NCBI GenBank assembly: GCA_020137815.1 | Contig: CM035357.1 | Coordinates: forward strand, 4,030,001-4,094,000 | Length of the DNA stretch: 64,000 bases | Direction: 5' to 3' | From: Hormiphora californensis | Taxonomy: Eukaryota > Animalia > Ctenophora | Part shown: piece by piece, positions 4,258 to 60,221 of the stretch | Numbering within the stretch: position 1 is the stretch's first letter | Layout of the letters: every line of letters begins with the position of its first letter | Translations under genes and position numbers: made by a program | Notes under the pieces: generated by a model | Told to the model about the DNA's origin: nothing | What the model saw: the letters and a program-made list of their open reading frames with translations, nothing else | Database searches by the model: none

Positions 4258-7200
4258 TCAGCTGGTCAGGGGCGACTCCAGCTTAATACTGGGCATTTGA
4301 AAGGGAGCTCCCATAGTGTTGCTGTTGTTGTTGTTGTTGTTGTTGTTGTTGCTGTTGTTGCTGGATACTTGAACCCCTCCTGGAGCCTGGATGTTCGGCC
4401 ATATCAGACTTGTCGGCATGTTGGAGTTGATGGACGTCTGATGGTCCAACACCTGATGAACCTGCAATGATACACGAGGTTTAGTTACTCCTTCATATAA
4501 TAGTTTTTTCCAAAAAAAAGCTGGTGCAGGTGATGTTAGGTAGGTTGTATTGAAAGAAATGGCTGCTCCTTCATAATACTATCTGTTGAACACACACACC
4601 TGATGTTGCTCCTTCATAAAACTATCTATTGAACACACACCTGATGTTGCTCCTTCATAAAACTATCGGTTGAACACACACACCTGATGTTGCTCCTTCA
4701 TAAAACTATCTGTTGTACACACACCTGATGTTGTTGGTTGGCCGAGTTGTTGTTGTTGTTGCTGGCTGAGGCTGCCGCCGCTGTAGCAAAACGGAACTGC
4801 TGTTGGGGATTTAGGCCGGCCGCTGCCGCGTAACCCGGCAAACTGGTGATTGATGCTGCGAGACTTGGCATCGCTGAAGGGAAATACTACGGTTAATCAT
4901 CCACCCATTCACGGGCACCTAATGGTAACCAAATGGTAACCAGAGTACCCGAGTGGTAACCATTTATGGTAACCATGGTTTACCACGTGATAAATCTTTA
5001 AGAAAATCCCCAACACGAACATAAATCAACCAGACCCATATAATACAGATCTGCACACTCATAATCACAATCCAATCAATTCACGCACAAACACACAATG
5101 GGTAAGAATTAATGCAAAATTAGTTGCCATTTATTCCTAGAATATCACTTCACTTTATAGTGATATTCTAGGAATCATTTTAATTTGAACTTTGTATTTA
5201 AAACCCCCTCCCCCCGCTTGATGCTTGATCCAGTTTGAAACCATTGAAACACGGAAGTTTACTAGAAAATAGAATTTCCATGCGTGATGATAATTCTAAA
5301 AATGTCTCACACACTAGCAAACACTGACTGGAGCAGGAAGTGCTCTAACAAAGGGACCATCTAGTAAGGAGTGGCGGGGGGAGAAAACATTATGCTGAGT
5401 TCTGTGTTTGCGTTCTGTTATTAATGCTTTTTCATAGCCTTTGCACCACTATAACCTTTTTGTCGAAACCATTATAATTACCACGAATTAATTAATCAAT
5501 TAATAACCCCACACACACACACATGGATATAACACGTCACGTGTCGACTAACCCTGACTCACATGCGGTACTCGTGTAGGGGAGAGAGGGAAGTCCAATA
5601 TCACTGGTAACAGCCGTCAGGGCGGACTGGTAGAAGGACGGATTGGTGGTTGTTGGGGAGTGCCAGTTTCCCGTTAGGTACTGGTGGTTCAGCCCGTGGT
5701 AGTTCGGGTTGATACTGCTGAGGTCCGCTGAGAGAGAGAGAGGGGTGTTTTAAGGAGTGGTCGGGTATTTTATCTACTAGAAACAAAACGCAGGGGATCG
5801 GGGATGCTACTTTTGATTGATATTCAACAGACATAAAAAATCATTATATGGGTTGATTGAGAGATTTTTATCCTCAGACGAGAATTCATAACTTCAATTG
5901 GACGTTCCTTTCTAGGGCGTGTTGGGGAGAGGGAGAGAGAAACAGGGAGGGAAAGGGAAATGAAGTCGGAGAGAGAAACATAGAGACCGAGAGAGATCAG
6001 AGAGATAGATAGACATAAAGAGATAGCAAGGGGGGGGGGGTCCAGCCCTAAAAAAAGCTAAGCTATCGGCCAAAATCAGGGTACCTTTAGCTTTTTTTAG
6101 CTTTTTTTAGCTTTTTTTAGCTTTTTTAGCTTTTTTTAGCTTTTTTTAGGCTAAAAAAGCTAAAAAAAGCTAAAAAAAGCTAAAATTGAGTTTTTAGTGG
6201 ATTCATATAGGTTCGAATCCCGCTGACGCCAAATTTTTTAAACTTTTATTATAACGTTTTATAACGTTTTTTGAACTTTTTTAAAACTATTTTTACAAAT
6301 AAAAACAAGGAAGTTTAGTTCAACAGTTTACACATGTTTCAATACAAAATTGTATTTCATCAGAACTGAATCACACTTGTCCCGTTCCAGGTTTCTTGCT
6401 TGCTCCTTCATAAAGCCATCCAATTAGAGATTGTATTTCTTGTGATGTCTGCAACTACCCATGATCTCGCTTCTCCGGTTTAGGAGTTGGTGGTTCCTGG
6501 ACTCCATCAAAATCTCCATCTTCTCGGTAGTGCACAGGTCACAGAACCGATCCCCAATTCTGTACGGTCTTCCCTTTTTCCTCACTTTCCAAGTGATCCC
6601 GAATGTGATCCCCCTGTCCTTCAACTCCCACACCTTTTCAGACAGCCTTGTAGATGTTCTTTTTTCGGAGTTGTTGAATGTGTGCTTGTGCTGGCTGAAT
6701 CGGGTTTTAAATGAGTTCCCTGTTAACCCGATGTAGAACAGGGAACTCATTTAAAACCCGATTCAGCCAGCACAAGCACACATTCAACAACTCCGAAAAA
6801 AGAACATCTACAAGGCTGTCTGAAAAGGTGTGGGAGTTGAAGGACAGGGGGATCACATTCGGGATCACTTGGAAAGTGAGGAAAAAGGGAAGACCGTACA
6901 GAATTGGGGATCGGTTCTGTGACCTGTGCACTACCGAGAAGATGGAGATTTTGATGGAGTCCAGGAACCACCAACTCCTAAACCGGAGAAGCGAGATCAT
7001 GGGTAGTTGCAGACATCACAAGAAATACAATCTCTAATTCGATGGCTTTATGAAGGAGCAAGCAAGAAACCTGGAACGGGACAAGTGTGATTCAGTTCTG
7101 ATGAAATACAATTTTGTATTGAAACATGTGTAAACTGTTGAACTAAACTTCCTTGTTTTTATTTGTAAACAGCTCCTCCTGGTGAGTAGAGCACTATCCG

Positions 7201-17378: not shown

Positions 17379-17480
17379 CTGAAAATAGGATAAATTGTAG
17401 ATCTCTGAAAATAGGATAAATTGTAGATCTCTGAAAATAGGATATTATAGATCTCTGAAAATAGGATATTTGTACATAGA
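17379..17480 (-). repeat. Tandem repeat (~26 bp x4) of the acceptor upstream of the minus-strand gene's ATG
   Basis: Unit ctgaaaataggataaattgtagatct reads ...cctattttcag on the minus strand. The first unit is the true acceptor. Confidence 0.8.
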
Positions 17481-35120: not shown

Positions 35121-36085
35121 TACGTGTCAGGCCCGGTAATGGGTTTTTTGACTTGCATAGTGTCCCATATATATGATATCATTACTTGCACGTGTGGACC
35201 CGTCTTCTCATTTTGTCAAACCGGAAGGAGAAGACTAAACTTTTTTTCTTTTTTTTGGGTCACTTAGCCACACGCTGAGCAAGCCTCATACCACCCGGGT
35301 ATGGGTAACTATGGCGCTAAGCTCCCCCCTTTCTCGATTTTGATAAAATGGGGGGAACCTATGGCATCAGTCATAAAGTCTGTCGAGTTGGGATTGTTCT
35401 GGAACAAGGTAACGTTTTGCCTTTGAGAGAGTCTTGAGTGTGGTTTAGTCTGGAACAAGGTAACATTTTGCCTTTGAGAGTGTCTTGAGCCTAGTTTGTT
35501 CTGGAACAAGGTAACGTTTTGCCTTTGAGGGTGTCTTGAGTTTAGTTTGTTCTGGAACAAGGTAACATTTTGCCTTTGAGAGTGTCTTGAGCCTAGTTTG
35601 TTCTGGAACAAGGTAACGTTTTGCCTTTGAGGGTGTCTTGAGTTTAGTTTGGTCTGGAAGAAGGTAACATTTTGCCTCTGCGTGTAACTTGGAGTTGGTC
35701 TGGATCGAGGTAACGTTTTGCCTTTGCGAGTAGGGTATGTTGGTCTTGGGGGGGTAATATTGGACATAAATGTAGCTGTAATTTAGTAATGAGACCAGGC
35801 CAAGCCCGAGAGACAGTTCAGTGGTAACTGGGAGGTCATATGTGTTGGAAATGAGAACTATAGACAGATTTGAGCTGCAAACCGGAAGGAGAAGACTAAA
35901 CTTCCTCGTTAGCCATTGTATGCTTTTACATACTTCAGAATAAGTTAAAAATCTTTAAATGAGAACAATTACGATGGTCATACAACAACCACATAGGTCC
36001 ATGTGCATACATGTGGATATTATAGGACACTATGCATATTTTATACACTGGTATGCAAGGGACTCAGTACCGGGCCAGACACGTG
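35121..36085. mobile_element. TIR element (probable CAC...GTG ends) with an internal ~60-bp tandem array
   Basis: acgtgtcaggcccggta ... taccgggccagacacgtg. Repeats tctggaacaaggtaac.ttttgcctttgag at 35397-35730. No TSD seen. Confidence 0.6.
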
Positions 36086-45900: not shown

Positions 45901-48900
45901 TCATTGGCCCGGGAGTTAACCAAATTGCCCCGGTGTGTTAACCAAATTGCCCATGTTCGAATTGCCCCGGTTGTTCGAATTGCCCCGGTAATCTTAATTT
46001 ACCAGAATTTGGAATGAAAACATGCGAATATTTAAATAATTTTTATACCATCTGAAAGCTGATATTATTAGCTTTCAGCTGGTTTTTTAAAATCGGAAAT
46101 TGACCAACTTAAACCGGATCTAGAGCCTATTTAGTGGTAACGGGCAGGCTCGAACGAGCAGTTTTCTTCTGGAGATAGGATGACGTCATTATGATAGCTT
46201 AACTAGGTGAGAGACGGGCAGTACTATGTTCGAATTGCCCCGGTTGTTCGAATTGCCCCGGTTTACCCTACAACCAGTATAAGAGTGTGTTTTAGCCTTA
46301 TAGCTACTTTTTTTTTCTTTTTTTTTTTAAATAATTTTAAATGAGTTTTTTTAAGACGTAAGCACTCGCGCCATAGGCTGCTAAACTATTAGTAAGAGTC
46401 AGTCGGGTATTTATTTAATGTGCAATTTGTACGTTTATATAATATCTTTTTCAAATCAAATCAAATCATCTTATTACTTTTCTTTGTAGACCCAATCTTC
46501 TCTCTGCCTCCCTTTTTTTCTACCCTCCTTGCCCCCCCCCCCAATATATTCTCTGATTTACATCCTTCACCAGGTGCCCCATGGACACATCACCTCCTTG
46601 GCTGTGAAACGATCCCATCGGCGCCTTGGTCTCGCAAAGAAACTCATGGACCAGGCATCCCGAGCCATGGCTGAGAGTTTCAGTGCTAAATACGTGTCTT
46701 TGCACGTGCGGATCAGTAACCGTGCTGCCCTGTCCCTTTACACGCACGTGCTAAAGTTTCAAATTGACGATGTTGAGCCCAAGGTGGGTACTGCAACTGG
46801 GTGTTTGTAAAAGATGAGTTTTTGTAGAGGGGAACCAGTTTATTAGTTTCGAAATATATCTCCATTATATATGCTTTTCATGCTCTCAACCAGTCCATAT
46901 GACAAGGCACATGTATTACTGCTACTCAGAACTCCAAAACCAATAATTCCCCTACTACAGTACTACGCGGACGGAGAGGATGCCTACGCCATGAAGAAGC
47001 ATCTAAATCACCTGACAGAGGAGACGGAAGACACTCGAAACTTTATCAATAGTCTGGGAATGGATTCCATTGAACCTACCTCCAATGGACATCAGGTCAG
47101 TGGCTTGTTTTGTTCAAATCCTTTTTTTATTGTTTACTTTAGCGTCATCCTCTTTGATGCCTACTTCACTGGTAAACACCTACAAGGTGAGGATTTTGAC
47201 GATGTTCACCTCGACGGAATAACTGAGGATTATGCTCGTTTGAAGAACGAGATAGAGGATGACGATCATCACGACCCGGAGGATCAACTCAATCGCCCAG
47301 TAGCCGCCGACGAAGTATCAGCAGCCATCAGCTCTATGAAAGCGAGTGGTAAAGCCTGGGACGGAGATGGTATCCACCCAACCATGCTGAAACACCTTCG
47401 CCACAGAACTGTGTAGTACTTGGCCGATATGTTTTCGAGATGCCTAAAGCTGGGTCGATGGCTGTGGAACTCTTCCTACGTTACATTCATCCAGAAACCT
47501 GGAAAGTCGTCCTATGTAAAACCAGGTTCCTTCCGACCCATCACAATATCATCGTACATCGGAAAGATGCTTGAAAGGGTTATGGACAAAAGAATTAAAG
47601 ATCTTTGCGCCATGGAATCAATACCAGATGAGGAACAAGAGGGCTTCCTACCGGCACGAAACACCACTCGCTATCTCTTCAAGCTGCTATCGACCGTTCA
47701 TGAAACACGCAGAAGAAAGCTGACAGCCTTTCTGTTGTGTATAGATTTCCAAAAAGCTTTTGACTCAGTTCCCCATGAATGTTTGATTGTGAAGCTCCAT
47801 AAACTTGGAATCAATGGAATGCTGTTGAACCTTATCGACAACATGCTTTCACAAAGAAGTGTTCGTTTGAAGATCAATGGAGTTCTTGGCCCACTCCGTA
47901 GGTGTGGAAGAGTAGGCCTTCCCCAGGGGGCAGTCCTCTCTCCAATCCTATTCATTCTCTACATCTCTGACTTACTCTGCACCAAAAATCTGCCGGAGGA
48001 GGTGAGATGTAGGACTGAAGCATTCAAGTTCGCCGACGACGGATCTGTGTTGGTTTTTGGAGACCAGACTCAATGCGAGAGAACTATGGCAATAGTTTTG
48101 GACTACATTCACAACTGGTGTCGGAAGTGGAGAATAGCGGTGAACTGTGATAGAAATAAAACAGAGATTGTCATCATCAGACCAAGGGGTTCATCAGATG
48201 ATAGTGCATCACCTCAGCAACTGAAGATTGGAAATAAAGTTGTCTCTTTTGCCAAGAATAGTAAAGTCCTTGGGGTTTACATTGATAGTAACCTAAATTT
48301 CATGACTCATGCTGCTGATGTACTGAAAAGATGCTGGTTTAACTGGAACACATTAACCTCAATGACTGGTCGACTGACAGGGATTAACAGTTCGGGGCTT
48401 TCGCTACTATTCAGAACAGTAATCTTGACAAAGATCCTTTATGCAGCACCAGTTTGGTTAAGACAGCGAACGGACTTCTTCGGAGATCTTCTTTCCCGAG
48501 CACGGCTGAAGATAACAGGGGGACAAGTTCACATAGCCAAACCTCTGTCAGAACTCCTAGCATGCGTGCCTCCTATTGACGTTCTTGTGGAAACAGTGGT
48601 AACCAAATTTGTCCTAAAAGGCCTTGCAGCTAAAGATAATATATCAGCTAAACTACTACAAATTGAAGCGGAACAAAATCATGTGTTCTTCTGGCAGATT
48701 GCTGCTACCAAAAGATATTTGGTTTGGAAGTCGACTCAACTAGACGGTGTCCAGATCCAGGATTCTAACAGAGATTCAATCAGAACTATTAACTTGGGAA
48801 GTTTAGAGCCGGACACTTTCCTGTACTCAAAAGAGGAAATGAGACAGTACACATGTAGTTTATGGGACCGGTCACTCAAATCATCGATTAACCATTTGAC

Positions 48901-49951
48901 TCGAGATGACCCTTTCAGCATACTTCCTATTCACTCTCAAGAAGAACTCGCCAACCTTATCAACTCAGAGGCCACTTTGGATTTCCCCATAATTCCAAGA
49001 AACATGTCCCGACAGAACTCATCTCAGGTCTTAGACTTTGTACATGGCAGATCCTTACGTTTTCAAGACTTCAGCTTCAGTTACCTGAGATACGAGCGAT
49101 CACTTACAGTTCCCAATTGTCTTGAATGTGGCCAACTCCCAGATTCAACATTCCACAAGTTGTTTGAATGTTCTGCGATAAAAGATGTGGAAGGGCCCCG
49201 TGAGGAACTAAGGGTGATATCTTCTTATGAAATGAACTTCCATCTTCCACTAATTTTCTCCAAAGACAAGCAGGTAAAATCGAACTTTAGAAAGCTAGTA
49301 AGAGCTGTAATAGAACAATCTTTATTTGGGGATCAACTGCTTGTGTAATGGGTTTATATTCTAATCAATTGTAAATGTATAACTGACCAGCCCGAGACGT
49401 ACACACTGTGTACGAATCGCACTCCACGGAGTGAATTTTTAACTAACTTATTTAATCAATTTACAATATATTTTAATCATTATCTAATCAGTATTTTAAT
49501 CGACATTTTATATTTTTTTGTATGATCTGACAGCTGAGAAAGTGTGAAAGAGACCTAGAGAGTTCCATTTTCCTCGCAAATAGGAGGGCAATATTGACAG
49601 TGTCAAATTATTGTAAACAGATTTAATAATAATAATAATAGCGTGGGGAGAGGCAAAGCATTGATTTCGATGTTTTCAAATTTCAAATAATTAACATTCC
49701 TTCTATTGAAGATGCTGCGAGCAGATAGATTACCGCTGTTGACGCAACTTTTATTTAACAGAGCTGCAGAGGCCAGCGATGCATTGTTTATAATTTTTTC
49801 GCTGCATTGACGCATGAACGAGCCGTTAAAAACTGTTTCTTTTTAGGAAGAAGTTGACGTGGAAGAACAACTAGAAAAGTTGAACCTAACGGACGTTGAT
49901 CCTAACATTTGTGATCCGGTGGTTGTCACGGGGACAGAAGAATTGGAGTAG
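42942..49951 (+). CDS. NAA10: N-alpha-acetyltransferase 10 (NatA catalytic subunit)
   Basis: Exons 42942-43027, 43244-43355, 46574-46783, 46961-47095, 49847-49951 (last exon less certain). MHIRCA...[29 protein letters not shown]...[19 protein letters not shown]...[11 protein letters not shown]. Confidence 0.95.
43380..43782. repeat. G/T-rich minisatellite (~39-41-bp units) near the start of NAA10 intron 2
   Basis: Repeated ggagttgttgtggggagttgct...gggatat. Confidence 0.85.
43930..45270. mobile_element. Oligo-G / oligo-C-ended foldback element with GACATTAAA subrepeats
   Basis: (G)n cgcgt ... acgcg (C)n. Inverted internal modules at 44243-44462 and 44727-44932. Confidence 0.7.
45488..46270. 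mobile_element. MITE with TAGGGTAAACCGGGGCAA TIRs
   Basis: TIRs at both ends and many internal aattgccccgg motifs. Confidence 0.75.
47146..49640 (+). mobile_element. 5'-truncated non-LTR retrotransposon with RT domain, in NAA10 intron 4
   Basis: RT motifs [36 protein letters not shown]-terminal CxxC...H...C zinc knuckle. In-frame stop at 47414-47416. (AAT)n tail and a probable TSD tagcgt. Confidence 0.92.
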
Positions 49952-50704: not shown

Positions 50705-50869
50705 GGTGGTAGAGATCAGTCCGTCTGTTTGGTGTTCTATAAATTGAGTAATTTATTTGTATACGACGTCTTCTTACATAACTCACAACAACACTCAGCT
50801 GAGCTTGATTTTGTTATATTCCCCCCAATCTTCCTTTTCTATCATGTCCCCTTTCCAAACTATCCCCCA

Positions 50870-53518
50870 CCTCTAGCTAAATGTTATAAAGTTTCACCCC
50901 TCCCTCTAGCTAAATGTTACAGTATTTCACCCCCTCCCTCTAGCTAAATGTTACAATGTTTCACCCCTTCATCTAGCTAAATGTTACAATGTTTCACCCC
51001 TCCCTCTAGCTAAATGTTTTAGTGTTTCACGCCCTCCCTCTAGCTAAATGTTTCAATGTTTCACCCCCTCCCTCTACCTAAATGTTACAGTGTTTCACCC
51101 CTCCCTCTAGCTAAATGTTTCAATGTTTCACCCCCTCCCTCTAGCTAAATGTTTTAGTATTTTACCCCTCCCTCTAGCTAAATGTTACAGTGTTTCACCC
51201 CTCCCTCTAGCTAAATGTTACAGTATTTTACCCCTCCCTCTAGCTAAATGTTTCAATGTTTCACCCCCTCACTCTAGCTAAATGTTTTAGTGTTTCACGC
51301 CCTCCCTCTAGCTAAATGTTTCAATGTTTCACCCCCTCCCTCTAGCTAAATGTTACAGTGTTTTACCCCTCCCTCCCCTCTAGCTAGATGTTACAATGTT
51401 TCACCCCCTCCCTCTAGCTAAATGTTACAGTGTTTCACCCCTCCCTCTAGCTAAATGTTTCAATGTTTCACCCCTCCCTCTAGCTAAATGTTACAGTATT
51501 TTACCCCTCCCTCTAGCTAAATGTTTTAGTGTTTCACGCCCTCCCTCTAGCTAAATGTTTTAGTGTTTCACCCCCTCCCTCTAGCTAAATGTTTTAGTGT
51601 TTCACACCCTCCCTCTAGCTAAATGTTACAACGTTTCACGCCCTCCCTCTAGCTAAATGTTACAGTGTTTCACCCCCCCCCCCCTCTAGCTAAATGTTTC
51701 AATGTTTCACCCCTCCCTCTAGCTAAATGTTACAGTATTTTACCCCTCCCTCTAGCTAAATGTTACAATGTTTCACCCCTTCATCTAGCTAAATGTTACA
51801 ATGTTTCACCCCTCCCTCTAGCTAAATGTTTTAGTGTTTCACGCCCTCCCTCTAGCTAAATGTTTCAATGTTTCACCCCCTCCCTCTACCTAAATGTTAC
51901 AGTGTTTCACCCCTCCCTCTAGCTAAATGTTACAATGTTTCACCCCTCCCTCTAGCTAAATGTTTCAATGTTTCACCCCCTCCCTCTAGCTAAATGTTTC
52001 AATGTTTCACCCCCTCACTCTAGCTAAATGTTTTAGTGTTTCACGCCCTCCCTCTAGCTAAATGTTACAGTGTTTCACCCCTCCCTCTAGCTAAATGTTA
52101 CAGTATTTCACGCCCTCCCTCTACCTAAATGTTACAGTGTTTCACCCCTCCCTCTAGCTAAATGTTACAGTGTTTCACCCCCTCCCTCTACCTAAATGTT
52201 ACAGTGTTTCACCCCTCCCTCTAGCTAAATGTTTCAATGTTTCACCCCCTCCCTCTAGCTAAATGTTACAGTGTTTCACCCCTCCCTCTAGCTAAATGTT
52301 TCAATGTTTCACCCCCTCACTCTAGCTAAATGTTTTAGTGTTTCACGCCCTCCCTCTAGCTAAATGTTTTAGTGTTTCACGCCCTCCCTCTAGCTAAATG
52401 TTACAATGTTTCACCCCTTCATCTAGCTAAATGTTACAGTGTTTCACACCCTCCCTCTAGCTAAATGTTACAGTGTTTCACCCCTCCCTCTAGCTAAATG
52501 TTACAATGTTTCACCCCTCCCTCTAGCTAAATGTTTCAATGTTTCACCCCCTCACTCTAGCTAAATGTTTCAATGTTTCACCCCCTCACTCTAGCTAAAT
52601 GTTTTAGTGTTTCACGCCCTCCCTCTAGCTAAATGTTACAGTGTTTCACGCCCTCCCTCTAGCTAAATGTTTTAGTGTTTCACGCCCTCCCTCTAGCTAA
52701 ATGTTACAGTGTTTCACCCCTCCCTCTAGCTAAATGTTACAGTGTTTCACCCCTCCCTCTAGCTAAATGTTTCAATGTTTCACCCCTCCCTCTAGCTAAA
52801 TGTTACAGTGTTTCACCCCCTCCCTCTAGCTAAATGTTACAGTATTTCACCCCTCCCTCTAGCTAAATGTTTCAATGTTTCACCCCTCCATCTAGCTAAA
52901 TGTTACAGTGTTTCACCCCCTCGCCCTAGCTAAATGTTACAGTGTTTCACCCCTCCCTCTAGCTAAATGTTACAGTGTTTCACCCCTTCATCTAGCTAAA
53001 TGTTTCAATGTTTCACCCCTCCCTCTAGCTAAATGTTACAGTGTTTCACCCCTCCCTCTAGCTAAATGTTTCAATGTTTCACCCCCTCCCTCTAGCTAAA
53101 TGTTACAGTATTTTACCCCTCCCTCTAGCTAAATGTTTCAATGTTTCACCCCCTCACTCTAGCTAAATGTTTTAGTGTTTCACGCCCTCCCTCTAGCTAA
53201 ATGTTTTAGTGTTTCACGCCCTCCCTCTAGCTAAATGTTACAATGTTTCACCCCTTCATCTAGCTAAATGTTACAGTGTTTCACACCCTCCCTCTAGCTA
53301 AATGTTACAGTGTTTCACCCCTCCCTCTAGCTAAATGTTACAATGTTTCACCCCTCCCTCTAGCTAAATGTTACAGTGTTTCACGCCCTCCCTCTAGCTA
53401 AATGTTACAATGTTTCACCCCTTCATCTAGCTAAATGTTACAATGTTTCACGCCCTCCCTCTACAGTCTACCTAAATGTTACAGTGTTTCACCCCCTCCA
53501 TCTAGCTAAATGTTACAA
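50870..53518 (+). repeat. 33/34-bp minisatellite (~79 copies) whose last unit is the ANAPC4 acceptor and start codon
   Basis: Consensus CCCTCCCTCTAGCTAAATGTTACAGTGTTTCAC. The final unit runs into ATG TTA CAA GTT GAA. Confidence 0.95.
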
Positions 53519-56500
53519 GTTGAACGGACGTTCTCTACTCCGATAGAACATGCCGCCTGGTCACCCACTGCCGACCTTCTAGCTCTCTCCTACAGTTCCC
53601 AAGAGGTCGATGTGATAAGGACGTGTATGACATGGCAGGTATAACCAGCTGAGAAAAGTGAGATTGTTAGTAACAATCTCACTTTGTATAAGTAACAATT
53701 TGTTACTTATACAAAAGAGAGACAAGTGAGATTGTTACTTAACCCATTAGTGACCTGTGACGCGTTATCGCAACCCAGGTTTGGAGGCGTATTACGGCTA
53801 GATATGAGCATTTGAAATGCTGTAACCACCACACATCACTAGAGAATCGTTCGAGCTAAAATTTTAGTCATTAAAAAGTTTTCTAAATTGACCCTAATTT
53901 CCGTAATTATCAATCAAAAAGTACAGTCGGACCCCGATTTACCGGGCCCCGATTTACCGGAACCCCGATTTACCGGGAGGATAAATTTCCCCCGATATAG
54001 GAAATTAATGGGATTTGACCCCGATATACCGGGCACCCCGATTTACCGGGCAAAATCCTTTCCCCCGAGCATCCCGGTAAATCGGGGTCCGACTGTACCA
54101 ATTTCTGGCATTCGGACTAATGCACATAAATGTGCATTTATGTAACATATCTCGACTAGTTACCGATATGACACATAGCTGATCAGTTAGAGAAATGTTC
54201 AGAGATGTTTCTGTAAAAAAACTAGATCTCAAACGGATTTCCTGTTGGCCCTGTAGAGCCTCAAACAAGTGGGTTGCGGAAACGCTACACTGGCACGGGG
54301 CATATATTGGAGGTTTTCAAAGCATGTTAAGGGGCAATTTAAAATAAATAAAAAATTATAGGGCTATTTTTGGTGCCTTTTTATATTTTTTAAAATCGAT
54401 TAAAGCAAAAAAATCAACTCAAAAAATTTATCGTTGCGTTTTCGCAACACACTTTTTGGCTGTTTCTGCCGGTTTCTGAGTCATTTAGTGGGATATTTAG
54501 CAAAATTATACATCAGTATGCTTATAAACATAACATTTTACAACTGTGGTTGGTTGAAAGTGTGTATATGAACCGTTTCCAATCGTTGCGTTTTCGCAAC
54601 ATCTATAAAGTAAACAATTTAGTACTGTAAATGACTCTGGGCCATTTTATCTTGTTATTAACGATTCTAGTGTTTGATATGTCTAACCTATGACCTCGTG
54701 GGACATCTGGGACGAGCTAGAGGCACCCGGCACGACTTAGGGAGCACCCAGAACGGCAAAGAGAGCACCCAGGAGGTCCCAGTGATCGTCTGGGACAACT
54801 CAGAGACCACCAGCAACAACTTAGGGAACGCCTGAAACAATCCAGGGGAGCGTGGGAGGACTCCTCGAGCAAAGTGGACGACTCAGGGAGCACCTGGGAT
54901 GTCCCAGGACGAATCAAGGAGCATCCAAAACGGCAAATGGAGCACCCAGGAGGTCCCAGTGATCGTCTGGGACGACTCAGAGACCACCAGCAACAACTCA
55001 GGGAACGCCTGAAACAACCCAGGGGAGCGTGGGAGGACTCCTCGAGCAAAGTGGACGACTCAGGGAGCACCTGGGATGTCCCAGGACGAATCAAGGAGCA
55101 TCCAAAACGGCAAATGGAGCACCCAGGAGGTCCCAGTGATCGTCTGGGACGACTCAGAGACCACCAGCAACAACTCAGGGAACGCCTGAAACAACCCAGG
55201 GGAGCGTGGGAGGACTCCTCGAGCAAAGTGGACGACTCAGGGAGCACCTGGGATGACCCAGGACGAATCAAGGAGCATCCAAAACGGCAAATGGAGCACC
55301 CAGGAGGTCCCAGTGATCGTCTGGGACAACTCAGAGACCACCAGCAACAACTTAGGGAACGCCTGAAACAACCCAGGGGAGCGTGGGAGGACTCCTCGAG
55401 CAAAGTGGACGACTCAGGGAGCACCTGGGATGTCCCAGGACAAATCAAGAAGCATCCAAAACGACAAATGGAGCACCCAGGAGGTCCCAGTGATCGTCTG
55501 GGACGACTCAGAGAGCACCAGCAACAACTCAGGGAGCCCCTGAAACAACCCAGGGGAGCGTAGGAGGACTCACCGAGTACACTGAACGACTCAGGGAGTA
55601 CCTGGGAGGTCTCAGGACGACTCAAGGGGCATACAGGACGCCTAAAAGAGCGTTTGAGAGGTCCCCGAAAGCGCCTTGGGCGACTCAGGGAGCACCTTGG
55701 AGGTCCCAGTACGTTTCATGGAGTATATAGGACTTTTTAGGGAGTATCTAGAGCGTCTCAGCGAGCTCTCAGGAGTCTCCGGGAAGCACCTGGGACAAAT
55801 CAGAGGACGCCCCAGTGAGTGATTATGGCCTGGGAGTCACAGAATGGCTAAGGATATGCCCACTGGGCTTGAAAGTGGCTATACCCCCACACTAAACACT
55901 ATATTTTCATGAATTCTCGGTCAAATTTACAAATATTCAACCTTATTTTCTAATCCAACATGATCTCCCACCTTCCAATATCGATATGATTCACCCAATG
56001 TCGGTTCAAATCAAGTTTAGTGATAATTTAACTGCTATTTCATAATGAAATTATATTGGTGTGAGGGTGGCACTATTTGCTGACATTTTTGCATGTTGCG
56101 GAAACGCAACCTTTCTGATTTCCTTCAAATTCCCCATAGATACCGTAGTAAGACCTTTACGGTGTTGCTCAGTAGTATAGAAATCAAAAAACTGTACGAG
56201 ATGGCCAGATTTGCTGTCGAATGAGGTGTTGCGAAAACGCAACGAAACTCTAAGCTGCCCCAAGCTTAAATCTGACTATCACAAACTATTTCTACTATTA
56301 CTAGACTGCCATTAATAACTTAGTTTGAAAAAAATTATTGAATGTTTAGCTGTTAACAGGCTCCGAATGTTGTTGCGAAAACGCAACGAAATTTAAACTT
56401 GCCCGGAGACAAAAACTAAATATCACAAATTATTTTCATAATAGATTGAAGTCTGTTAAGTGAAACTTTAAAATGATTGCATCATAATTTTAGCTGTAAA

Positions 56501-58885
56501 ATGACTTTGAAAAGTGTTGCGAAAATGGGACGTGCCAGTGATGCGTTTTCGCAACAGGTTGTTTTAAGCACTTCCCGATAAGATAGAGACTTCCGCTTTT
56601 CAACTTACCATATTGGTGCTGCTAGGGCACTATTCCCAAAAAATTGGAAAATTTCTTCAAAAATTTCGATATCTGGGCACTAATGGGTTAAATACTATAC
56701 TAAAGAGAGACAAGTGAGATTGTTACTTTTACTAAAGAGAGACAAGTGAGATTGTTACTTATACTAAAGAGAGATAAAAAGAGAGATAGTTACTTGTAAC
56801 AAAGGGGAGGCATTCAGCAAAGGGTGGGGTTGTTTCACTAGCTAACTAAGTAGTTAAGTAGTATTGTCCTTTTGAAAAAATGGTGATTGAATTTTGCATT
56901 TTATTCTGAGTTTCTCTCCAGAGTGCAAGGTTTAAGAGGATAACGTCATTAAAATTTAACTAAGAAACTGCTAGAATAGTTATACATGTTGAAATATGAG
57001 GCTTCACCAAGTTAGCGGTTATATCATGACCACGTACAGTATTTTTGTTCTTCAAATCACTCTTAATCCACACATATCTCTTCAAAATCAAATAAAACAT
57101 TGATATCTTCCTCAGATCGTCTGGAAGTTGAAAGACGAGGGTGAAGGTGAGGTGAGGGGTCTAGTTTGGAGGCCAGATGGTAAGGTCCTTGCGGTTCGGC
57201 ACCCTGACATAGTAAACCTCTATAAAGTTGAGGGAGGGACCCTCATCCACTCGTCATCTACCCGAGACACTATCAGTGCGTGGTGTGGTGTGCCCTTGAC
57301 TACCCCCGATCGGGAATATCTCCTTCCACCCGTGCCCAAGTTACCACCGATAGAGGACGTTAAAACGGATATAATGGCAACCCGGGACCTCCTTCAGGGA
57401 CAACCTGACCTCAATATCATGGCAATGACGGATGAGGCTGGGGTGAAGTTGGTGAGTCAGGGGATCCTGCAAATTGGCAGTGTTCCAACTCCTGCCCCAG
57501 CCACAGTTGGACTAACACCCGACGGAGGGTATTTGTGTGCTGTTTCAGCCACTAATCCTGTCACGTGTCGAGTTTACGATTGTTCTCAGTTAGCGGAAAA
57601 TCTCCAAAACATCAATGATATAACGAAGATTTATAGCAATGTGCTAACTCTCTCTGAGTACATGTTGTCTACATTCAAGGCCATGTCAGACTGTTGGGAT
57701 ACGGTCCTCTCGGAGTTCAATAAGAAGCTGTTTGCCTTCCACATGTCCCTTCATCCGGGCACCCTATCCAAACAATTCCTTCACCTGTTCGTCACTGGAA
57801 CTGCCAGCATGGAGCTGGAGAATTTCCTGGTCCACACCCTGAAAGAGAAGGAGATATCTAAACTCCTCTCCTCCACTCTCCAATCGTATCAAGGCATTGA
57901 GAAGTTGATCACAAGGCAGCTCATGTCGTGCTGTTATGCCCTATCCACCCACCTCCAGACCCTACTTGGTATGTCTCGGTGGTATGATAGGTATGGGGCG
58001 GTGGGGTTATCCGAGTGTGCCGTCCAACACTCCATCAACAAACTTAGCGGACTAATGATCAAATCACAGGAGCTATTACAGAGTATATCACGATCCAAAA
58101 TGAGGCTAAGCGCCTTCCTGAAGTGGCTCCTAAAGGCCACAATTTCGTTGAGTGATGAAAACCCCACCGTTGTGAAACTGACCGAAGAAGAGCTCAAGTT
58201 GGTGGTTGACTTTCTCAAAACGGAGAGTCTCTTCGCTACCCGGGCAGACACGTGCCACTTTAATATTGATACCGTGTGGCAGTATTTTGGGGAGGATAAC
58301 ATCATAACTCCTCCTGATTTCCATAACAACAAACTCCTGGACACCGTGCTAACCCTGCTGAAGGACAAGAAACCATATCTTACAGTCCAACCTAACCTGT
58401 CCCTCCTTCAATCTCACAAACTCTTCTCTGATTCATTGTTACAATGTTTCGAACTGTCCCTCCCAGAGATCACAACTCCCCTTCACACCCTGACCATTGG
58501 TTCTCTCTACACCCTGGCAACGGATTGTTCGAATATCCGGTACGTTGATAGCAGTAACACAGTCCGGGCGTTATCTCTCCCCGATGGCACCCACCAGAGA
58601 CCTAACAGGAGGCTCAATGTGACCGACACCATCACCCAACTTCACGGATACGATGCTGATTATGTAGTGGAGACGGAGGACAGTGAGGGTAGGAAGGCGG
58701 TTTGTATTTGTATGGAGGGTGAGGTGGTTAGAAGTGAGTTACCGGGGGATGTTGGGTTGGTGGTTATTTCTGAGAGTAGGAGGTTAGGGGCCGTTGTGTC
58801 AGCTTTGGGGAGGAGAATTCAGATTTTAGATTTGGAGGAAAATGAAGATGATGATGATGAGGACGAGGAAGGAGAAGAAATATGA
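53510..58885 (+). CDS. ANAPC4: Anaphase-promoting complex subunit 4
   Basis: Exon 53510-53638 (MLQVERTF...AAWSPTADLLAL...WQ) spliced in phase 0 to exon 57116-58885 (IVWKL...LVWRPDGKVLA...helical APC4 region, acidic tail). About 632 aa. Confidence 0.88.
53924..54095. mobile_element. Tc1/mariner-type MITE (CAGTCGGACCC family)
   Basis: Perfect TIR ends with TA TSD. Confidence 0.85.
54717..55700. repeat. 177-bp tandem repeat (~5 copies) built of ~22-bp subunits
   Basis: aaagtggacg recurs at 54871 and 55048 and onward. Subunit resembles gactcagggagcacccaggagg. Confidence 0.9.
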
Positions 58886-59030
58886 TTTTGAGATATAATT
58901 GTATGTAATTTGTTTTTTATTTGACCCCCTATCACCATGATGTAAAGATGTCTTTTTATTCAACACACTTTTTGTTCATTATCTCCCTGCGCCATGATGC
59001 TCTGACACTTTCCTCATCTTTAGGTAGGGT

Positions 59031-60221
59031 ATGGTGAAGAACCAACTTCGGAGATTCTGGGGATGCCTAATAACTGGGGTGATGTTCCTGCTCCGTCCCT
59101 TCATCAATTGTCGGCGCTCTAACCTCCGATCTGTTTATGGTGCTAGATTTCTCGCCACCACTGAGCCTTCAGAGCTAGTGGTGAGAGGGCGAGTTAGGTT
59201 GGAATCAAGCTCACCTAATGAACTGACCCTAGACAGTGCTAGTATTCGGCCTGTGATAACTAGTTCGGCCAGGCTCCAGTCCTATTCCGAACCCAGACCT
59301 GGTGCTCCAGAATCTGGAGCGGAGGCCGAGGTAGATGGAGTCTTGGAGGAGTGCAGCGAGGAACTGCTTCAGGAGTTGCGGACTAAACAGGAACAACTTC
59401 GCAAGCAAGTTATTTTTGGGCGGGATTTGGAATCCACATTTTCCACCGTCGGTGGTTTTGATATTTCCTTCGGAGAGGGGCGGAATGCAGCCGCAGCATT
59501 GGTCGTCATCAAATATCCATCCAATGAGGTCTGTTATGAGTCATTTATCAACGTCACACTAGAAATGCCTTATGTTTCGGGTTTCCTTGGGTTCCGAGAG
59601 ATTCCCGCCCTTGAACGCCTCTTGGACAAGATGAAAAAGGAAGTCCAATGGCAGCCGGATGTTATAATGGTTGATGGAAATGGAAGGTTGCATCAGAAAC
59701 AGTTTGGATTGGCTTGTCACGCTGGTGTGGTGACTGGGATTCGCTGTTTTGGAGTGGCCAAGGACCTCATCCAATTCGAGACCATCTCCCGTGACAACAT
59801 CCAAGATGAATTGAAAGCACTGAAATCGTCCGGTGACTGGTTTCCGTTAAAACTGAACGACGTGGTGTTGGGGTGTGCGGTTAAAACCGGGCAGAATGCC
59901 AAGAATCCTATCTACGTTTCGGAGGGTCATGGTGTTACCCTGGATACCGCAAGGCAGATAGTCATGGCAACCGCTCAGGAGTTCCGGGTACCACAACCAA
60001 CGAGACTTGCAGATCAGTTATCAAGGAAGAAAATCAGGGAAGATAAGGAGAAAAGAAATGGACAGCGTAATGGAACCGCTAGTCGAGACCAGAAGCGCAA
60101 TGGGACCCCTAATAAAAGCCAACAGCGCAATGGACATCAGAGTAACGGTAGTACATCTAATGGTAAATCTAATGGAGGAGGGAAACAAAAAGGACGCGGT
60201 AGAGGGTCTCACAGAGGCTAA
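59031..60221 (+). CDS. ENDOV: Endonuclease V (inosine-specific), with N- and C-terminal extensions
   Basis: GGFDISF, PYVSGFLGFRE, MVDGNGRLH..FGLACH, GVAK, PIYVS.GH, RVPQPTRLAD. Single exon. Confidence 0.93.
   Translation: MVKNQLRRFWGCLITGVMFLLRPFINCRRSNLRSVYGARFLATTEPSELVVRGRVRLESSSPNELTLDSASIRPVITSSARLQSYSEPRPGAPESGAEAEVDGVLEECSEELLQELRTKQEQLRKQVIFGRDLESTFSTVGGFDISFGEGRNAAAALVVIKYPSNEVCYESFINVTLEMPYVSGFLGFREIPALERLLDKMKKEVQWQPDVIMVDGNGRLHQKQFGLACHAGVVTGIRCFGVAKDLIQFETISRDNIQDELKALKSSGDWFPLKLNDVVLGCAVKTGQNAKNPIYVSEGHGVTLDTARQIVMATAQEFRVPQPTRLADQLSRKKIREDKEKRNGQRNGTASRDQKRNGTPNKSQQRNGHQSNGSTSNGKSNGGGKQKGRGRGSHRG

Follow-up and report, generated by a model that had tools for sequence, protein, structure and literature searches.

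Tandem duplications that span an exon-intron boundary, termed mirages, have been described in amphioxus, where many copies keep the AG or GT splice signal, array length is variable, and RT-PCR suggests that regular splicing is undisturbed (PMC3087553). They occur at Adh3 and at the globin genes BflGb6 and BflGb9 (Ebner et al. 2010, PMC3087553, citing Canestro et al. 2002). In trypanosomes, alternative spliced-leader (SL) trans-splice sites are known that add upstream open reading frames (uORFs) to mRNAs (PMC2916883, PMC6084854), and in the comb jelly Hormiphora californensis a 44-nt leader has been reported that occurs at 718 places in the genome and heads no fewer than 56% of Iso-Seq reads (PMC8527503). 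For the sequenced individual of that species (Hc1), 2.5 million Iso-Seq reads and 28 Gb of RNA-seq are publicly available (PMC8527503). Here we compare with these systems a tandem array located directly in front of ANAPC4 in a 64,000-nucleotide stretch of the H. californensis genome (assembly GCA_020137815.1, contig CM035357.1, positions 4,030,001 to 4,094,000 of the forward strand), which we call the window and in whose coordinates all positions are given unless stated otherwise. The array is a minisatellite of the already known mirage type, present at extreme copy number at a putative trans-splice acceptor and start codon in a comb jelly. Judging from the sequence, we consider it on balance probable that it lies at the SL acceptor and start codon of ANAPC4 in a discarded outron, and that it is tolerated since the gene-proximal acceptor is the one finally used.

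The window is eukaryotic sequence with a G+C content of 41%, and the array is by far the strongest and largest tandem repeat within it. Tandem Repeats Finder locates it at positions 50870-53517, with a period of 34 (or 67), 78.6 copies, 89% matches and a score of 3940. Using CTA[AG]ATGTT as an anchor, we counted 79 units head to tail in the array as assembled, 38 of them 33 bp and another 38 of them 34 bp long, with one unit each of 37, 38 and 41 bp. Both the location and the figure of about 79 copies agree with an earlier, sequence-only reading of this DNA. The 78 units upstream of the gene-proximal copy (50877-53505, plus strand) follow a common plan, in which CTAA-ATG-TT is followed by a C-rich pyrimidine tract and a terminal (T)AG, typically as CTCTAG. 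All 78 contain the ATG, and the dinucleotide preceding the 79 anchored units is AG in 74 cases and AC in the other 5. There are 29 distinct sequence variants among the units, and whole blocks of units recur within the array, units 43-49 being the same as units 68-74 and units 3-7 the same as units 27-31. Variants and duplicated multi-unit blocks of this kind are a typical signature of unequal exchange in a real minisatellite. On its far side, the array is bordered by a unique, pyrimidine-rich segment on the plus strand (50815-50876) that ends in CTCTAG (AG 50875-50876) and probably represents the original pyrimidine tract and acceptor, now left at the distant edge of the array. A TATA-like motif on the same strand (TATAAAT, 50738-50744), 131 nt 5' of this first acceptor AG, is a candidate for the ancestral core promoter, which would place the promoter 5' of the whole array.

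Each copy of the start codon opens a small reading frame. The 33-bp units encode MLQCFTPPSS followed by TAA, with the next ATG immediately adjoining, whereas the 34-bp units stop at the TAG (MFQCFTPSL or MLQCFTPSL), and in 14 units the frame reads ATG TTT TAG. These are the same frames that the sequence-only reading had described. The longest uORF has 24 codons, and none of the uORFs extends into ANAPC4. It had also been argued that the use of any upstream acceptor would load the mRNA with uORFs, and this holds if the array is transcribed. The array as a coding repeat was considered and rejected: the mixture of 33- and 34-bp units breaks all frames, and the longest open reading frame is 68 codons long.

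The last unit ties the array to the gene. Unit 79, starting at position 53506, is the sole unit that continues into ANAPC4 (as ...TTACAAGTTGAACGG, the protein reading MLQVERTF...TWQ), as had been noted before, and it does so at an orthologous start. ANAPC4 is a two-exon gene on the plus strand, and we searched its exons separately. Exon 1 (53510-53638) comprises 43 codons from the ATG at 53510 to a donor, CAG/GTATAA, at 53638/9 (the slash marks the splice junction, here and below); its first 8-9 bases lie within unit 79. Intron 1 (53639-57115) runs from GT to CAG, ends in ...CCTCAG and consists mostly of inserted repeats, and exon 2 (57116-58885) carries 589 codons and the TGA stop (58883-5). 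The first exon yields a weak match to the Pfam family ANAPC4_WD40. It aligns with residues 3-44 of the Mnemiopsis ANAPC4 protein at 71% identity, and the two proteins share their start methionine. The second exon matches ANAPC4 (5.6e-36) as well as ANAPC4_WD40, and comb-jelly ANAPC4 proteins, one of them named from Mnemiopsis leidyi, align with 98% of its length at 60-62% identity. The N-termini of the comb-jelly orthologues read MTFQVDRT or MAFQVDRT, and on these alignments the ATG at 53510, inside the last unit, is the ancestral start codon. Because the start methionine and the residues following it are orthologous to the comb-jelly proteins, the repeat was copied from the gene and not the reverse. 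The units share with the gene-proximal copy the pyrimidine tract, the AG, CTAA and ATGTTACA(A), that is, both the intron side and the exon side of the junction, and the authentic junction stands at the edge of the array, where unit 79 adjoins exon 1. The identity of the unit proposed earlier, a pyrimidine tract, AG, 4-nt leader and the first 8-9 coding bases of ANAPC4, is therefore confirmed. We also looked for homology between unit and gene past codon 3. A match to ...CTCTAC at 53533-8 was not significant when compared with random window positions (P 0.08-0.3), and we thus limit the shared segment to 53506-53518.

Two features of intron 1 may be recorded here. A second individual (X5) has an allele that lacks an insertion of ~3 kb (53670-56696), position 53669 being joined there to 56697; the ends of the insertion look piggyBac-like (TTAA, CCCATTAGTG...CACTAATGGG, TTAA), and it contains a 177-bp repeat present five times, with an open frame. 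Positions 53921-54098 hold a miniature inverted-repeat transposable element (MITE) of 178 bp whose 26-nt terminal inverted repeats are perfect. Its depth is extreme in each of the three DNA sequencing runs, that of a related species included, and it is also found in contigs of a run that we guess to be RNA.

We examined the trans-splicing context of the acceptor. The published H. californensis leader contains no ATG (PMC8527503), and its 3' end reads ...AATTTGAG. Searching the genome (110,691,255 bases in 45 contigs) with a 33-nt pattern made of leader and GT, with at most 2 mismatches, produced 551 matches as opposed to 0 for a reversed control; none of the 551 lies in the 64-kb window, which by this search holds neither a spliced leader nor an SL RNA gene. 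The sequence-only reading had spoken of (trans-)splice acceptors, and indeed the species trans-splices (PMC8527503) and carries the leader 551 times in its genome. At ANAPC4, the AG at 53504-5 lies 4 nt before the ATG at 53510, and the next two genes likewise have a pyrimidine tract and an AG shortly before their start codons, at a distance of 7 nt (Endonuclease V, ATG 59031) and 9 nt (the following gene, ATG 62389). Because the species uses its leader on at least 56% of cDNAs, and the leader was found 551 times, an SL acceptor at AG 53504-5 is plausible for ANAPC4. The gene-proximal TAG and the CTAA following it (53503-53509, plus strand) would then represent the SL acceptor and the 5' UTR.

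In many of the 551 leader copies, the next bases are GAGAT, GAGCT or GAGTT and not a GT donor; such copies probably derive from SL-capped RNAs by retro-copying and would then not be SL RNA genes. The copy at C9:1772016 reads leader/CCAAATG, with the same 4-nt spacing as at ANAPC4. The distance from the ANAPC4 stop to the acceptor and ATG of the Endonuclease V gene on the same strand is ~140 nt (58883-59031), and by its layout this looks like an operon-type pair.

We propose that the array arose when a segment of ~33 bp, comprising the SL acceptor, the 4-nt 5' UTR and the first 8-9 coding bases of ANAPC4, was duplicated in tandem. Growth would have proceeded by slippage and unequal exchange, with multi-unit blocks being duplicated as well. 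The array would be situated in the outron, upstream of the trans-splice site, and would be discarded from the primary transcript. The mature mRNA would be formed at the gene-proximal AG 53504-5 and would read SL/CTAA-AUG..., with the 78 upstream ATGs never reaching a ribosome. An array of this size could be tolerated in front of an essential gene because its ATGs would not enter the mRNA. Choice of an acceptor through exon definition is a general principle of splicing, and the proximal copy may be selected in this way, as it is the sole copy with a real exon, whose donor is located 133 nt downstream. In addition, or instead, an RNA trans-spliced at an upstream copy would keep the acceptors downstream of it and could be trans-spliced again, up to the last one. 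From well before the AG to 13 nt past it, most copies have the same sequence, and it must therefore be features located further downstream that single out the last copy. That the array is transcribed, that the proximal AG is used, and how this AG is selected are all inferred here. The sequence-only reading had offered, as its alternative, that some mechanism selects the last acceptor, and it is in effect this alternative that we favor.

Several observations weigh against this explanation. The pyrimidine tract, the AG and the 13 bases after it are kept in 74 of the 78 upstream copies, and nothing near the splice site singles out the last one. None of the listed sequencing runs that contain the gene is an RNA run. 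In X19, which we guess to be RNA, the contigs are limited to the MITE and to an acidic low-complexity tail, and none covers ANAPC4. Scans of metagenome contigs for the 5' end of exon 1 and for an SL-unit junction returned 0 matches, and an SL-headed retro-copy of the ANAPC4 mRNA was found 0 times in the genome. Finally, array-like units occur in a related species (see below), which could mean that they have been retained for a reason.

We next compared the array with others of its type. By eye, the window contains arrays that copy a minus-strand exon end and donor (4564-4733), a minus-strand acceptor (17379-17468) and an AAG/GTAAC donor-like site (35394-35731). A second array of acceptor plus ATG, with 4.5 copies of a 77-bp unit, is located 2.2 Mb from the ANAPC4 array (G000:C8:1823617-1823964; L014:1118-1465). 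Its unit reads CCCCTAG/AAGCTGTGTC-ATG-TGG-TGG..., the upstream copies end as 14-codon open reading frames, and from the last copy the sequence leads on into the signal peptide of a hexosaminidase-like gene. At both loci, head-to-tail copies of the gene's own acceptor and ATG adjoin the real pair, but the ANAPC4 array has 78 copies over 2.6 kb as compared with 4.5 copies, and it fronts an essential, single-copy cell-cycle gene. The ANAPC4 array is the large end of a recurrent class, not a one-off device. As in the amphioxus mirages, its unit spans an exon-intron boundary, the authentic junction lies at the array edge, and many copies keep their signals; in amphioxus, length varies through unequal exchange, and the edge units diverge. 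In contrast to the amphioxus cases, the boundary at ANAPC4 is a putative SL trans-splice acceptor at the 5' end of the mRNA, the copies have no competing upstream donor, and each brings a start codon and a uORF. Copy number differs as well, with 78 units here and 3-6 in the amphioxus globin genes, and the host is a comb jelly rather than a chordate. The trypanosome sites (PMC2916883, PMC6084854) resemble ANAPC4 in that several AGs lie 5' of one coding region and their choice would decide whether a uORF is present. In trypanosomes the AGs are few and unrelated, with use proven by SL mapping, whereas at ANAPC4 there are 74 near-identical copies known from DNA. A dedicated regulatory role of the array is thus not needed, and a mutational by-product is the simpler reading, because similar junction-copying arrays recur in this genome and are known in amphioxus (PMC3087553).

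The unit is confined to this locus. A 28-nt unit pattern, allowing up to 3 mismatches, gave 77 matches genome-wide, all 77 inside the array, as were all BLAST matches. A transposon or dispersed satellite is ruled out by this confinement to a single locus in the 110.7-Mb assembly. A known RNA family was also considered and rejected, the sole Rfam match being an intron hairpin that scores far below the gathering score. We then asked whether the array might be an assembly artefact or have been grossly over-expanded in assembly, given that the mean PacBio read length is 2.7 kb (PMC8527503), about the length of the array itself. Reads were compared as Logan contigs for all runs over 53260-59259, a stretch that takes in the final eight units together with all of ANAPC4. 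Array units are present in contigs of the probable source individual (X1) and of the second individual, which comes from another study (X5). Summed word depth, which is not a copy number, amounts in X1 to ~887 over the last units and ~11 over the single-copy exon 2, and in X5 to ~24,400 over the last units and 800-1,000 over exon 2. The ratio of array to single-copy depth is thus ~80 in one individual and ~25-30 in the other, again as depths and not as copy numbers. We conclude from the depths that several copies of the unit are present in the reads, and no more than that. A relative (X8, organism B), with 91-93% identity in its exon-2 contigs, has a 325-nt contig of array-like units with a match of ~90% that apparently continue upstream in register. 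The presence of units in all three sources, a depth far above that of exon 2 in X1 and X5 (with the same reservation about depth), and 29 variants arranged in duplicated blocks, which is unlike a collapsed or stuttered assembly, together make an artefact very improbable.

If the array is real, it could still lie outside the ANAPC4 transcript, with transcription starting within or after the last units, or with the units serving as promoter or initiator, so that the AG would be unused or the outron very short. The A/T-rich CTAAAT core held between C-rich tracts in each unit would fit such a role, as would the up to 44% of Iso-Seq reads that lack the leader (PMC8527503). We regard this as unlikely: the tract, the AG and the short spacer before the ATG are arranged as at the neighboring genes, with most mRNAs of this genome being trans-spliced, the TATA-like motif is found 5' of the array rather than within it, and the pieces that are repeated are splice-site parts, as they are in the intronic junction arrays of this genome. 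Of slightly lower probability still, in our view, is the decoy field put forward by the sequence-only reading, in which the leader is added at upstream units, uORFs lower translation, and array length sets ANAPC4 expression. Its attraction is that 74 intact acceptors are each followed by an ATG and a reading frame of 2-24 codons that ends 0-7 nt before the next ATG, in a species with established SL trans-splicing (PMC8527503) and with a relative that has array-like units; alternative trans-splice sites that add uORFs are known in trypanosomes (PMC2916883, PMC6084854). Yet both this genome and amphioxus have kindred arrays, without known function, at ordinary splice junctions, the units diverge freely (29 variants, 5 lost AGs, a mixture of 33 and 34 bp) with no sign of selection on the uORFs, and an essential gene is unlikely to be stably regulated by a fast-mutating minisatellite. 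We find it just as doubtful that ANAPC4 transcripts begin upstream of the array and receive the leader at many of the 74 acceptors, whether as a recursive walk to the last copy or yielding mRNAs with 0 to n uORFs. If true, this would amount to recursive trans-splicing, which has not been described so far, or to a hypervariable copy number that sets the dose of a subunit of the anaphase-promoting complex (APC/C), and the presence of array-like units in the related species would then be due to their retention and not to a recent common ancestor. A further possibility, which we judge to be rather improbable, is a classical mirage at a cis acceptor, the array forming the 3' end of a cis-spliced 5'-UTR intron behind an unrecognized non-coding exon, the donor of which would be spliced to the proximal AG. 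Cis and trans acceptors look alike in sequence, and the published mirages are all located at cis junctions (PMC3087553). There is, however, no evident upstream exon, the 3.5 kb upstream consist of the remnant of a long interspersed element (LINE) reverse transcriptase and of unique non-coding sequence, and trans-splicing directly before the ATG is the reported norm for this genome.

Further upstream in the window, a reverse-transcriptase open reading frame of 643 codons (47417-49345), the LINE remnant, lies between a GNAT acetyltransferase gene and the upstream region of ANAPC4. From its open reading frame, we take the acetyltransferase to be NAA10-like.

To our knowledge, the choice of trans-splice acceptors is poorly understood outside nematodes and trypanosomes. 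A mirage-type array in the outron of ANAPC4 would provide a natural test, since most of its 74 acceptors have one and the same sequence over at least positions -25 to +13 relative to the AG, while a single one of them leads into a real exon; it could thereby separate the contribution of downstream context (exon definition) from that of transcription order. A dedicated function is unlikely in view of the related arrays elsewhere in this genome, and if the ANAPC4 array is inert, it would still be a large example of a repeat type that is recurrent in a comb-jelly genome. With 78 start codons placed, apparently harmlessly, before an essential gene, the array illustrates the idea that leader trans-splicing may free the region upstream of a gene from constraint.

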